A DNA stretch of 63,766 nt, the filler included, from Olpidium bornovanus S191 (lineage: Eukaryota > Fungi > Olpidiomycota), in assembly GCA_017911155.1 (NCBI GenBank). It is 27 parts of 27 records of this genome, joined end to end, with 100 filler letters (N's around TTAATTAATTAA, not from the genome) between each part and the next. Parts side by side here need not be neighbours in the genome. Positions count along the whole stretch, not along the records: positions 48,650 to 54,277 come from JAEFCI010000570.1; 26 more parts are not named here. One strand, written 5' to 3'. The notes under the pieces were generated by a model, which was not told the DNA's origin, did not search any database, and saw only the letters and a list, made by a program, of their open reading frames with translations. A program made the position numbers and the translations under genes. Shown in pieces: positions 48,550 through 54,377 of this stretch. The number at the start of each line of letters is the position of its first letter. Within the stretch, counting starts at the first letter, position 1.

Positions 48550-49946
48550 NNNNNNNNNNNNNNNNNNNNNNNNNNNNNNNNNNNNNNNNNNNNTTAATTA
48601 ATTAANNNNNNNNNNNNNNNNNNNNNNNNNNNNNNNNNNNNNNNNNNNNCCATGCCGGAATCGAGGGACTTCGTGAAGAGGGGCGGGATCCTAACGAAGA
48701 GGGACCAGAACCGACCTAGGATATTGGTGTTTAGTGACGTCGAGAGGATGAACGGCGCCGCGGAAGACACCGGTCTTGTGGAAACCCTTGTTCGGGCAGT
48801 GAAGCGCCAGAGAGCCCTGAGTTTAGAATGCCTGCAATTTGCTTACTCGATGCCGGGGAATTCCCAGGCAAGTCGTGCGGGTGTGCATGGTGGCTCTGTA
48901 CGGCCCCGTCTCCAGTGTCAATGGAACCGGCGAGTGCGCCTTCCGAGGGTCCCAATCGACGAAGCTGAACCGCAGCAGTTCCGCCTACAACCCCGTACCG
49001 CTGAATTTGAGAGCAATGGAAGAGCTGGAATTCCTCAGCGAGCGCCCTGTGTTCGGACGTCAATTTTTCTTCCCCGGTAGTACTTCTTTCGCCAGCGACG
49101 AGCCTGACGCGGTATGGATTCCCGGCGTCCGGCCGGCAGCTCGTGGCATTTTGGGACGAGTGCTGTGAAAAGCGGCAGCGGAGGAGGAATTATGAGGATA
49201 ACCTTGCAGATCTGAGGGCAGCTTGTCGGGCGCAGGGCGCGGACTTGCTCCTGGAGGATGATGAGCGACTCTGGCTGGAGGAGGAGGAGGACGCCAAGAA
49301 GGTTCTGCAGAATTTAGTTGCAGCGCCCGCCGACCGTCTGGTGTCGCAGTCAGCGAACGCCGGTAGGAACGGCAAATTTTCGTGCGGGGCAAGGCCCAGG
49401 AGAGGTGTTTATTTTTTTTATTTTGTTCTGCGGACCCGGCTGAATAGCAGGTAGTATGTAGCCGTAAGAAACGGCGTTGGGTTGGGCGGTAGCCGGTAGT
49501 GGTCGGCGGAGGCCTTGTCATGGCGGCCCGCCGCCGGTCTGTTCCCTCGGAAGAGAAGCATCCGGATCCACCAATCTCTGTCGTTCCACTGCTTCCACGG
49601 CGGCTCCCCCGGCCCTTCCCCGCCCGCCATCCCTCCCTCCGTACGCCCCTCGCACACCAGCCGGTCAAGTATCTTTCGTTGAACGTCGAAAACCCCCCTC
49701 CCGCTTTCCCCCTCCCCACGCCTCTCCCCCCCGCCCTTCTGCGTCCAAAAGGGCACGCTTGACTTGCTGCTCCTGAGGAATTCCCTCCATTCCTCCCCGC
49801 ACCCGGGGGCTTATCCTCCGCGGCGGCCCGGCGCGCCGATGCAGCTGCGGGTCACCTCTCGCTTGCGGCTCGACGAGACGAATGAACCGTCATGTTCCGT
49901 CTGCCATGTAGTGCGGTGTCGTCTAAATCAAACACATCCTCGTTGT

Positions 49947-50017
49947 CGCCTGATGGTTTAGTGGTATAATTCACCCTTAGGGTGGGTGAGACCCGAGTTC
50001 GATTCTCGGTCAGGCCC
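49947..50017 (+). tRNA. tRNA-Pro (AGG), intronless, with a C1:C72 mismatch
   Basis: CGCCTGA TG GTTT AGTGGTA TAAT T CACCC TTAGGGT GGGTG AGAC CCGAG TTCGATT CTCGG TCAGGCC C; TTTT shortly downstream. Confidence 0.9.
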
Positions 50018-50949
50018 TACAGGACGGTTTTGCCGATCCGTACTTTCGGACCCGCCGTTTGTACATGCAACGCGCAATGCACGCGCCTTTCCTTTTTTTT
50101 TTTTTTTTTTTTTGTTCCCCCAACAGAAACTGCCTCTTTGACTAGTGTGTGGTCTACGAACGCGCGCCGCAGCGTCGTTGGGCGGCCGGAGTTTTGATTT
50201 ACGGCAAAATGCACGGAGCAACGTGCACAAACAATTTGAACTCCTGTACACACACACTCACTCACTCACGGGGATTCCGGGCTGCGGGCGTTTCTTGAGG
50301 AGAGGGCGAGTGGAAAAACCGCATCTACGTTGCGTGGTGACGGGCTTACCACTACAGGGAGAGGGGCCTAGCGAGCGGTGATGCATTGAACGGCTCGTGA
50401 GAAAAAAACATATCACCTCTGCTTCTCGCACGCACGCTTTTTTTATGAGGCTGAACGAAGACCGTCTCAGGACTGAGCAGTCCTCGCACCAAATTCTTCC
50501 CGCCCGGCGAATCCCGGTCCAGGTACCGGCGCCTTCCAGAATATGCGGGCGATAACTCCCCCCCGCTTTCCCGGCTGCACACGCAAAAAAGGTTCGGCCG
50601 CCGTTCGCGGTCTCGCAGGAAAAGCCCCGCAATACCCTTCTTTTTTTCCCCCTTCGGGTGTATAACCCACAGGCGGACGGAGAAGGGAAACGCGGCGGGG
50701 TTGGGCAGTGCGGTGGAAAGCCGCGTGGTCCTCTCGAAATCGGGGAGAAAGCGGCCGGGGCCCGGCGGAAAATCTTTCGTGCAAATAAGGGAAACGCAGT
50801 TCCGCGCGGGGAACGGGCGGGCGTTCCCAAGTCAACGTTCTGCCGCTTCGCACGGCGACGCTACCGACGCTTCTCGTTACGCCGTCACGGGCGGGCGACG
50901 GGTATTGCCTTTTGTAGAATTGCAAGAAGCGCGCCGCGCGCCGTCACTG

Positions 50950-51650
50950 CTTCGGCACAGCCGACCAGTACAGCGATCAACGAAATGTTGTACCTCGCTG
51001 GGTCACTGGTGCACATGGCAAACAGCACGCAACCGGACATCGGCCGAATGTGCTGGCGTGACGCAATGCCAAAACCTGCAACCGGCATTGTGACACGGTC
51101 AAGCACGACATGCGATCAGAGCCGAAGGTTTGAGAACATATTGTCCATGCCATTAAATGCCTCAGCCGGCGAATTCCTCCACATTATCTTCAATGACCGG
51201 AGCAACTCCCGAGTTCCGGACGGTCAAACTATTCGTGGGCTCCGGATTTTGGATGAACCAGCGGACCGTGAACCATCGGTTCACGTACGGGCCCATTACT
51301 CGGCTCAAGAATTCCTGTTGCTATCCGCTTTTTCGATAGCGCGATTGATTACAGCGGGCTCACGGCACCGGAATCGAATTTCCTCGGAAGGGTGTTCCGA
51401 AATGAAAATCACCATTAGCGGTGCGATTTTCGGGATCTGCACATCCGATATCGTTGTCCGAAAATGCAAACGCTCCGTCGAATTCGGTGGAGTCGGTTCT
51501 CCTTGACGGAATTCTGTGATGAGCGGGTGACGGAAAAGGGGTGTTGCGGGCGAATTTACCTTGTACGCTGACGTGGGGAACATGCCGGCTTTAAACTGTT
51601 CTACGGCCTTGCGGGCGGCCGGATTTTTCGCGAAATACGGTTTTTTTTTT

Positions 51651-51688
<38 letters not shown>

Positions 51689-52260
51689 GCGAGAATTTCG
51701 GTCCGAGATTTACGCCGTTGTCAAGCGAAAGTCACAGCCACGCCCCCGAAATTCTGAATTGTCCGCTTGAAACTTATCCTCGCACCACCGAATCGGGCGT
51801 CGGCAACATATTTTTTTCTGTCTCTTTTTTGGCTCTCCTCACGCGGTCACTCGCCACTGGGAAAAATTTGTCTAGTCCCCAGAACTTGATCGCAGGATGC
51901 GGCGGCTCACACCCTGCGCACATGTGTATTTATTCGCCGTACAATTTCAGATTGTAGGCCGACGCCGGGTTGGAGCCGTACTTCACGTGCGCCGACCACA
52001 TGGGAGGGCGCATGGCCGACTTCGCTGCGGACACCGGACCGCACCCAGCGCGTTCAGGTCGGTCGCGTTATCAACCGTCGTGGAGGCGATACCGCAATGC
52101 ACAAACCATCCATGACCACCGTTCCGCTGCGAGGGGACAAACAGGGCAGTAGTGGTAACCGCTTCTCTTTGGATGTCGCATAACCAATACCGCCGGAATG
52201 GGCTCTGCAGCACGGCACACGGCAGTTGTAAAACGAAAAGGCAATGAGGCGTTCATTGTA
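50950..52260 (+). mobile_element. Highly degenerate Ty1/copia RT/RNase H remnants
   Basis: AGSLVHMANSTQPDI (GSLMYLA..TRPDI-like), MADFAADT (DADFA-like), SVALSTVVEA (VALST.EAEY-like). Confidence 0.65.
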
Positions 52261-52800
52261 TTTGCCGTTGAAAGGCGGGGTGGGTCATGGCGCTCGTTGT
52301 GTGTGAAGTAACGCCAACGCAGGCGAAATAGGAGCGTTCGCTCTGCAAAAACGCTCCTCCCGATCCTGGACGGCACTCGGACAAGAATAACCGTCGTGGG
52401 GGTTGCCGAAAGCGCGCCTCCGGGATCATCTTGCACAAGAGGAGCCCGCCCGTCGCATTTGCGTCGCCGGCGCCGAACGGAGCAAAGCGTCGCAGACGTC
52501 CCTCCGGAATCGCTCCGGATGCCCCGCTCGCGACGCCTGCCGAGTCGCACGCTTCCGGGGCGGGGTTTGCCGTAACCGGAGTCGGCGCGGGCGCGGGGCG
52601 GGCGGCCTTGGAGGCTTTTGGTCCCCCGAGCGGGGCGATGGCAGAGCTCAGCGAAACGTTCTTTCCGTTGAGTCTCGAGAGCTGAGGGCCAAATTCGAAA
52701 TCCACAACATGGCAGGTTAGCCGCGAAATGAGAACGGCCGGGAATTGTGTTCTCCGTGCAAACAAAAACCACCAGCCGAAATGTAGCCCTTTTCCTGTTG

Positions 52801-54075
52801 TTATCTCCGCACCCTCCGGTGTCGCCCTTGACCTACACGGCTTTGGCACGAGGACTTCGAACGCCCGAGGGTGTACGCAATTTCGTTGTAATCGCGCATG
52901 CGGCTCTTATTAGCCCATGAGAGGAGTATGGTGTCTTCATCGAAAGTCCAGTGTTTAAGCAGCGGAACCGGTACTCGCAGATCAAATGCTTCAACCCGCG
53001 CAACCAACTGCCGATTGTCACGATCGCCGAGGAACCTCTGCCATTTTACTGCAAATCTCCTTCTCATCAACTCAAAAAGATCCGGTCTCAGCTGCCTACA
53101 CCGCCGCTTAACTGTCGAGGGATCTCGGCCAATTGCTGCAGCGAATTCTCTCCAATTGACATTCCGCGCCGACCTGCGCACCCGCCGCTCGAACTCAGCG
53201 CCGACAGCGGCGATCTCTTCGGCCGTCCACGGCCTACGAACCGAAATTTCCCGGGCACCGCGAGAATTTAATCGGCACGCCTTTGTCACGCATGCTCCGA
53301 GTTTCCTGCCGGGTATTTGGCCGGCGACAGCTTTCCACGTGTTTCTTCCAGAGTTTTCCGCGTAAACTGCCAGGCGAGTGAGTAGGTCGACTTCGCCTCG
53401 GGTCCACCGCGGCTTGACCGCGGCCGCAGCGCCCGAATCCTGCTCCCTGCACACACGCGCTCGGACCTCCGGGCCCTCGCGGGTCCTCCCCTCCGTTGCT
53501 CTCTTCCGCATGGCCCTTAGCTTCCGCAACCGCCCGACCACCGCTTTTCTCGAGCGGCCGGTGATCCTCGCGGCGGCCGACGTCCAAGCCCGCTCGCGTC
53601 CGTTCCGCAGAGCTTGCGCCAGGGCCCACAGCTCGGCGTCCTCCTCGGGCGTCCAGGCCGGAAGCAGCGAGGAGCCTTTGCCCGTGCGCAGCAGGTACTG
53701 GGCCTTCCGCTGGCACTGCTGCGCGGACCGTCCCGCCACTTTGCTCGCGACTGTGGTCCACTTTTCGGCCGATTCGCATAAACGAGCTTCGGGCGAGTTG
53801 ATGGCCGTAATCAGATTCGTGACCTCGTCTTCGCTCCAGAGCCGGCGGGTCGAGCGCCGGGCTGCACCGACCGGCGGCGGGCCGAGCGTCGTGGTGGCAC
53901 GGCGGTCGACCCCACCTGTCTCGCGCACGACGGACGACGACGCCGTCTCCTGGGCCGCGCCGGCGGCGAGCACGGCGGCGCCCGGCGCCGGCCTAGGCAA
54001 GCGGAGGTGTGCACGTGGCGGAAGGGCGGCGGCGGCGGCGCCATCGGCGAGGCTCCTAGGGCACCTCCGGGGCAT
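52801..54075 (-). CDS. Intronless protein with about 5 Myb/SANT repeats
   Basis: WSEDEVTNL..W..VA..V.GRSAQQC; WTPEEDAEL..W..AA..ITGRS; WTRGEVDLL..W..VA..IPGR; WTAEE..W..FA..IGRD; WTFDEDTILL...IA..LGRS. Confidence 0.85.
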   Translation of the reverse strand: MPRRCPRSLADGAAAAALPPRAHLRLPRPAPGAAVLAAGAAQETASSSVVRETGGVDRRATTTLGPPPVGAARRSTRRLWSEDEVTNLITAINSPEARLCESAEKWTTVASKVAGRSAQQCQRKAQYLLRTGKGSSLLPAWTPEEDAELWALAQALRNGRERAWTSAAARITGRSRKAVVGRLRKLRAMRKRATEGRTREGPEVRARVCREQDSGAAAAVKPRWTRGEVDLLTRLAVYAENSGRNTWKAVAGQIPGRKLGACVTKACRLNSRGAREISVRRPWTAEEIAAVGAEFERRVRRSARNVNWREFAAAIGRDPSTVKRRCRQLRPDLFELMRRRFAVKWQRFLGDRDNRQLVARVEAFDLRVPVPLLKHWTFDEDTILLSWANKSRMRDYNEIAYTLGRSKSSCQSRVGQGRHRRVRR

Positions 54076-54377
54076 TGTCTCCTGGTTCCGTTCGTGGGGG
54101 GGGGGGGGGGGGGGGGGGGAAGGGGGGGGCGGATCAGCCCACGCCCATCAGCGCGTTTTTGCGCCAAAGGGAACGGACACGGCGCCGCCGCCCCCCCTTC
54201 GCCCGCTCGGGGCTCACCGACGCCGCCGCCACTGCCGTCGCCGCTGCCTCTCACGCTGGCACCTCCGCTGCCGCCGGNNNNNNNNNNNNNNNNNNNNNNN
54301 NNNNNNNNNNNNNNNNNNNNNTTAATTAATTAANNNNNNNNNNNNNNNNNNNNNNNNNNNNNNNNNNNNNNNNNNNN

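Follow-up and report, generated by a model that had tools for sequence, protein, structure and literature searches.

Is a nuclear tRNA gene whose first acceptor base does not pair used as it is encoded, or is its 5′ end repaired? The question is raised by a tRNA-Pro(AGG) gene in which C1 stands opposite C72, found in the root-parasitic fungus Olpidium bornovanus at positions 49947–50017 (+) of the window, by which we mean the whole stretch of 63,766 nucleotides. A reproducible defect of the 1:72 pair, restricted to the 5′ side of a nuclear tRNA, makes this the kind of gene that a repair pathway would target, and Olpidium is placed between the chytrids that edit their mitochondrial tRNAs and the terrestrial fungi. 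In our analyses the gene is of an ordinary kind, and the single feature that sets it apart is reproducible, which makes it a modest curiosity. The facts are only compatible with repair of the 5′ end, and a simpler reading, in which the mismatch is tolerated, fits them equally well.

The gene and its setting

The gene lies within a 5,628-bp piece (positions 48650–54277) that corresponds to contig JAEFCI010000570.1 of the assembly GCA_017911155.1, and it is the single tRNA, tRNA-Pro(agg), that ARAGORN called there. It is 71 nt long including the discriminator base C73, and its identification rests on ARAGORN, the Rfam family RF00005, and covariation. The Rfam match reached 47.7 bits (E value 3.9e-08; gathering score 29) and covered model positions 1–71 with a posterior probability of "*" throughout; given the top posterior probability at every aligned position, we rejected an alternative register or fold. 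Rfam flagged two nonstandard pairs, 1:72 (C × C) and 13:22 (U × U). Direct reading of the acceptor strands, CGCCTGA and TCAGGCC, showed pairing at six of seven positions, so the original prediction had described the stem accurately as failing at 1:72 alone. The T12–A23 pair in the D stem and the CACCC/GGGTG anticodon stem, both part of the same description, are present as well. A free-energy fold returned acceptor pairs 2–7 as before and left C1 unpaired.

The unpaired base is the C at 49947 (+), a position at which the relatives have G, and its would-be partner is C72 at 50016. C72 and the discriminator C73 (50016–50017, +) are both canonical for eukaryotic tRNA-Pro, C73 being a proline identity element (PMC9976931). 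The anticodon AGG (49979–49981, +), given by ARAGORN at position 33 and also by the Rfam alignment, sits in the loop TTAGGGT with G37, and the proline identity elements G35 and G36 (A34 type) and C73 (PMC9976931) are present. The variable loop consists of four nucleotides (AGAC), and the bases engaged in tertiary contacts are all in place (U8, A14, G15/C48, G18 G19, U33, and the T-loop TTCGATT). Absent from 49947–50017 is the G1–C72 first pair that is the norm of eukaryotic cytosolic tRNA-Pro.

The surrounding signals resemble the layout of a Pol III gene. Positions 8–18 of the tRNA read TGGTTTAGTGG (49954–49964, +), which we take, from general knowledge of the consensus, to be an A-box-like promoter element, and the T arm contains AGTTCGATTCT (49996–50006, +), presumably B-box-like by the general pattern of type 2 Pol III promoters. 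A TTTT at 50028–50031 (+), 11 nt 3′ of the gene, is a candidate terminator. Such internal boxes followed by T residues would fit transcription by Pol III. A run of 21 T at 50093–50113 (+) may serve as a back-up terminator, although T runs of this kind also occur away from the tRNA in the piece (repeat family D1, and a run of ∼47 T at 51641–51687).

The assembly is a binned metagenome of 13,695 contigs; the zoospores behind it were non-axenic and had been washed off the roots of cucumber (PMC7865070). The sole called gene of the contig encodes a spliced Myb-domain protein (∼51930–54266, –) that bears the name of Olpidium bornovanus; the contig gave no protein match besides this one, and the protein is known from one contig alone. 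The Myb ORF contains both CCC and CCT codons, which call for a Pro(AGG) tRNA. The GC content of the contig is 52–78%, and from the high GC, the spliced Myb gene, and the A34 anticodon we judge the tRNA locus to be probably of nuclear type.

The 3.3 kb around the tRNA (48650–51930) contain no called gene, and their longest ORFs, at 49060–49719 (–) and 50658–51506 (+), have no Pfam match. When we used these two ORFs to seek further copies of the locus, they were not on record elsewhere. We found no repeats or SINE structure around the tRNA inside the 5.6-kb piece, and the gene has one defect only, both of which speak against a tRNA pseudogene or a tRNA-derived repeat. The long homopolymer runs of the piece fall in intergenic or 5′ regions: in addition to the T run at 51641–51687, there are ∼34 G at 54096–54129, within sequence of 75–78% GC. 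A match to mir-9128 at 54113–54204 was taken as chance, given its score of 33.4 bits versus a gathering score of 53 and the same 75–78% GC composition.

The base at position 1 across samples and relatives

One account of an isolated mismatch is that the base is wrong, through an assembly or base-call error, or that the contig belongs to another eukaryote in the non-axenic sample. The origin of the genome as a metagenomic bin of zoospores off cucumber roots (PMC7865070) and the lack of any protein match on the contig beyond its own Myb gene lend this some ground. We compared the region 49700–50300 with contigs of four public runs, of which two (X5 and X6, with a small share of words) contributed none; the contigs of the other two, X1 and X2, show the presence of variants and not their absence.

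Run X1, dated 2012, provided two contigs. The first (1,676 nt, depth 30) covers 49700–49976 with no differences and has C at 49947. The second (157 nt) matches 49947–49995 only, also with no differences and with C at 49947, while the 108 nt preceding the tRNA are unrelated to the window and the likeness begins exactly at position 1. The different 5′ flank marks this as a second locus of tRNA-Pro(AGG), also with C1; its depth is 7.5, versus 30 for the first contig, and a minor strain may be its source. Run X2, from 2025 and from another study under another organism label, provided a 315-nt contig that covers 49784–50080 and has C at both 49947 and 50016. The sole difference in 297 nt is a T>C change at 49912, 35 nt upstream of the tRNA, by which X2 represents a different isolate from the assembly and X1.

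A base-call error at 49947, which the original prediction had itself named as fatal to its case, is thus excluded by the two X1 contigs and X2, and we rejected an assembly error on the same evidence: C1 is found in both X1 contigs, and C1 together with C72 in the contig from an independent study. Foreign DNA would alter the name of the organism and not the observation. Overall, we regard an artifact or a foreign contig as very improbable.

The same contigs are informative about other copies of the gene. Those of X1 end within the tRNA, at 49976 and 49995, and such breaks show that the sample contained other sequences with 30-mers in common with the tRNA; these variants could include canonical copies. 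On the other side, none of the X1 contigs that match the tRNA at ≥80% likeness has G1, and the contig from X2 passes through the tRNA without a branch, with no other copy sharing 31-mers, such as a G1 twin, seen there; both are weak absences.

To place C1 among related genes, we searched metagenome contigs from JGI and NCBI. The exact central 36-mer of the tRNA had no match among them. In a second scan, the D arm with T12/A23 and the AGG loop were fixed and the anticodon stem was left free, which recovered 19 loci; these carry 18 intact tRNA-Pro(AGG) genes that share the D-arm type. G1 was found in all 18 of these environmental relatives, paired with C72 and accompanied by C73 in 16 and forming G1·U72 with A73 in the other 2 (L005 and L007), and none of the 19 loci had C1, which leaves the Olpidium gene without a relative of the same signature in this set. 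Since G1–C72 with C73 is normal for tRNA-Pro(AGG), the deviation lies in the 5′ base, as the original prediction had held. The non-pair U13 × U22, in comparison, is universal among the relatives. The tRNAs encoded on the same loci, taken together, served as controls: their acceptor stems pair at all seven positions, with no 1:72 mismatch in 16 distinct sequences (29 copies). The canonical relatives scored 54.9–57.3 bits in Rfam, versus 47.7 for the Olpidium gene, and this gap of 7–10 bits is about one terminal pair's worth.

Canonical eukaryotic tRNA-Pro(AGG), read as IGG and exemplified by L002 and L005, shares with the Olpidium gene the loop TTAGGGT, the D arm, and the T arm, and most of these relatives also share its C73; the difference is G1 in the relatives and C1 opposite C72 in Olpidium. 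Because the search pattern included T12–A23, finding this pair in the relatives does not count as independent support. We counted covariation on five distinct aligned members of the family, using the cloverleaf structure and 500 shuffles. The cloverleaf paired in 94.3% of the cells, and nine pairs changed on both sides; the covariation score was matched by none of the 500 shuffles and approached by no slid register. The only unpaired cells in the alignment were the universal U13 × U22 and the C1 × C72 of Olpidium. Relative to the other members, the double-sided changes of the Olpidium gene are located in the acceptor stem (5:68, 6:67, and 7:66) and the anticodon stem (28:42 and 30:40). The fold is under selection and the gene is otherwise intact, and with nine double-sided pairs and a score that shuffling never reached, the earlier argument for selection on the fold instead of pseudogene decay was sound.

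Possible fates of the mismatched pair

Imposing the cloverleaf on the sequence gave an energy of –21.1 kcal/mol with C1 versus –24.1 kcal/mol with a hypothetical G1, a loss of 3.0 kcal/mol that leaves six pairs of the acceptor stem in place. The identity elements of eukaryotic tRNA-Pro are C73, G35, and G36, and the pair G1–C72 is "without effect" for the human ProRS, which recognizes the anticodon branch and the backbone (PMC9976931). Since this eukaryote-type enzyme is indifferent to 1:72, charging should survive the C1 × C72 mismatch, and because 1:72 is not read by a eukaryote-type ProRS, we tentatively favor tolerance over repair: the tRNA may well be made and used with C1 unrepaired, a reading to which we give something short of an even chance.

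If the mismatch is tolerated, the tRNA would be transcribed from its internal A and B boxes and cleaved by RNase P at the normal site, and C1 would be retained in the mature molecule, giving a six-pair acceptor helix with the last pair frayed. The tRNA would still be charged and used, with ProRS reading G35, G36, and C73 and not 1:72. The G-to-C substitution at position 1 would have been mildly harmful or neutral and could have been fixed in an obligate parasite with a small population, possibly spreading between the tRNA-Pro(AGG) copies. The gene would then provide a natural elongator tRNA with a frayed first pair, and its use would bear on the question of how far RNase P, exportin-t, and eEF1A depend on the 1:72 pair.

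Tolerance has to contend with the rarity of terminal mismatches in elongator tRNAs (0 of 16 controls and 0 of 18 relatives), and a terminal mismatch could weaken the binding of the elongation factor or nuclear export. The bacterial and organellar initiator tRNA-fMet has a conserved and functional C1 × A72, which indicates that a tRNA can be processed and charged despite a frayed first pair. In tRNA-fMet, however, the mismatch is a mark of initiator identity, whereas the Olpidium gene encodes an elongator tRNA-Pro with C × C.

Alternatively, the gene could be a weakened or near-silent variant, a piece of mutational load, with canonical G1–C72 genes elsewhere doing the work. Mutation in nuclear tRNA genes is exceptionally fast and linked to transcription, and natural variation includes alleles whose acceptor stems are imperfect (PMC13010820). 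In an assembly as fragmented as this one, with 13,695 binned contigs (PMC7865070), other Pro genes may sit elsewhere. The breaks of the X1 contigs inside the tRNA, which signal more variants sharing 30-mers, and the low depth of the second C1 locus (∼7.5 versus 30), possibly from a minor strain, point the same way. However, a gene with a single flaw, and with double-sided compensations in the rest of its cloverleaf, is not decaying; C1 is common to two loci and two samples; and the G1 copies expected under this explanation went unseen in the contigs of X1 and X2, weak as these absences are. We consider a weakened copy possible but somewhat doubtful; if it is nothing else, the mismatch would represent ordinary mutational load.

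The third explanation is templated repair, in which a Thg1-like 3′–5′ polymerase of the cytosol or nucleus would put G1 in the place of C1, with C72 as the template, making the gene a candidate for nuclear tRNA editing. Mitochondrial tRNAs with 5′ editing are known from Acanthamoeba, Dictyostelium, and the chytrids Spizellomyces, Harpochytrium, and Monoblepharella, in which the 3′ strand serves as the template from which Thg1-like proteins restore the 5′ end. The Olpidium gene resembles these tRNAs in that one of the first three acceptor pairs is mismatched as encoded (C1 × C72), and in that the deviation is on the 5′ side, while the 3′ base is canonical, retained as C72 by the relatives, and able to template the repair, which is the signature of edited mitochondrial tRNAs (PMC4284800). 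In addition, selection acts on the remainder of the tRNA and C1 is conserved at two loci; chytrid fungi perform mitochondrial 5′ editing, and cytosolic Thg1/TLP enzymes without known substrates exist, with amoebae among their carriers (PMC4284800). If repair does take place, this would be the first 5′ editing of an acceptor stem outside organelles and would offer a substrate for the cytosolic TLP-type enzymes.

Several observations weigh against repair. All known 5′-edited tRNAs are organellar, with many per genome and the replacement shown by cDNA, whereas the Olpidium case is one gene, on a nuclear-type contig and with A34, seen as DNA only. Editing systems hit many tRNA species, and this 5.6-kb contig carries one tRNA. 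A single terminal mismatch is cheap to tolerate, at ∼3 kcal/mol and with a human ProRS that is indifferent to it, and the fast mutation of nuclear tRNA genes and the imperfect acceptor stems of natural alleles (PMC13010820) form a strong competing background. Lastly, 5′ editing has been tied to no nuclear-encoded tRNA besides the G-1 of tRNA-His (PMC4284800).

The addition of G-1 by Thg1, the only accepted 3′–5′ addition on nuclear-encoded tRNAs, differs from the proposed repair in its position, as the change in Olpidium would be at +1 after the removal of C1. Thg1 selects tRNA-His via its GUG anticodon, and the Olpidium tRNA has AGG instead. According to PMC8127993, the Thg1 family can add G in the Watson–Crick manner with C73 as the template. 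On balance, we consider templated repair of the tRNA-Pro(AGG) unlikely.

Loci carrying the relatives

The nearest relatives of the Olpidium gene, L005 and L007, are 71 nt long and have the AGAC variable loop and a T arm identical to that of Olpidium. Their genes (L005:11625–11695 and L007:3701–3771) have a G1·U72 wobble as the first pair and A73 instead of the eukaryotic C73, and the contig that carries them is compact, eukaryotic, and equipped with an ORF resembling MSS1/GTPBP3. This ORF indicates that the L005 taxon is eukaryotic and does not place it any finer.

Two further environmental sequences, L019:1434–1529 and L020:5107–5202, resemble tRNA-Pro(AGG) with a normal 5′ half and a T arm interrupted by unrelated sequence. 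ARAGORN called no tRNA at either, and they could be genes with T-loop introns, split genes, or decayed copies. At L015:1–2211 (metagenome contig JAAUXZ010135671.1), 11 tRNA genes are packed on one strand with spacers of 0–15 nt, flanked on one side by the 3′ end of an LSU rRNA and on the other by the 5′ part of an SSU rRNA, both eukaryotic, a position that places the cluster inside the intergenic spacer of the rDNA.
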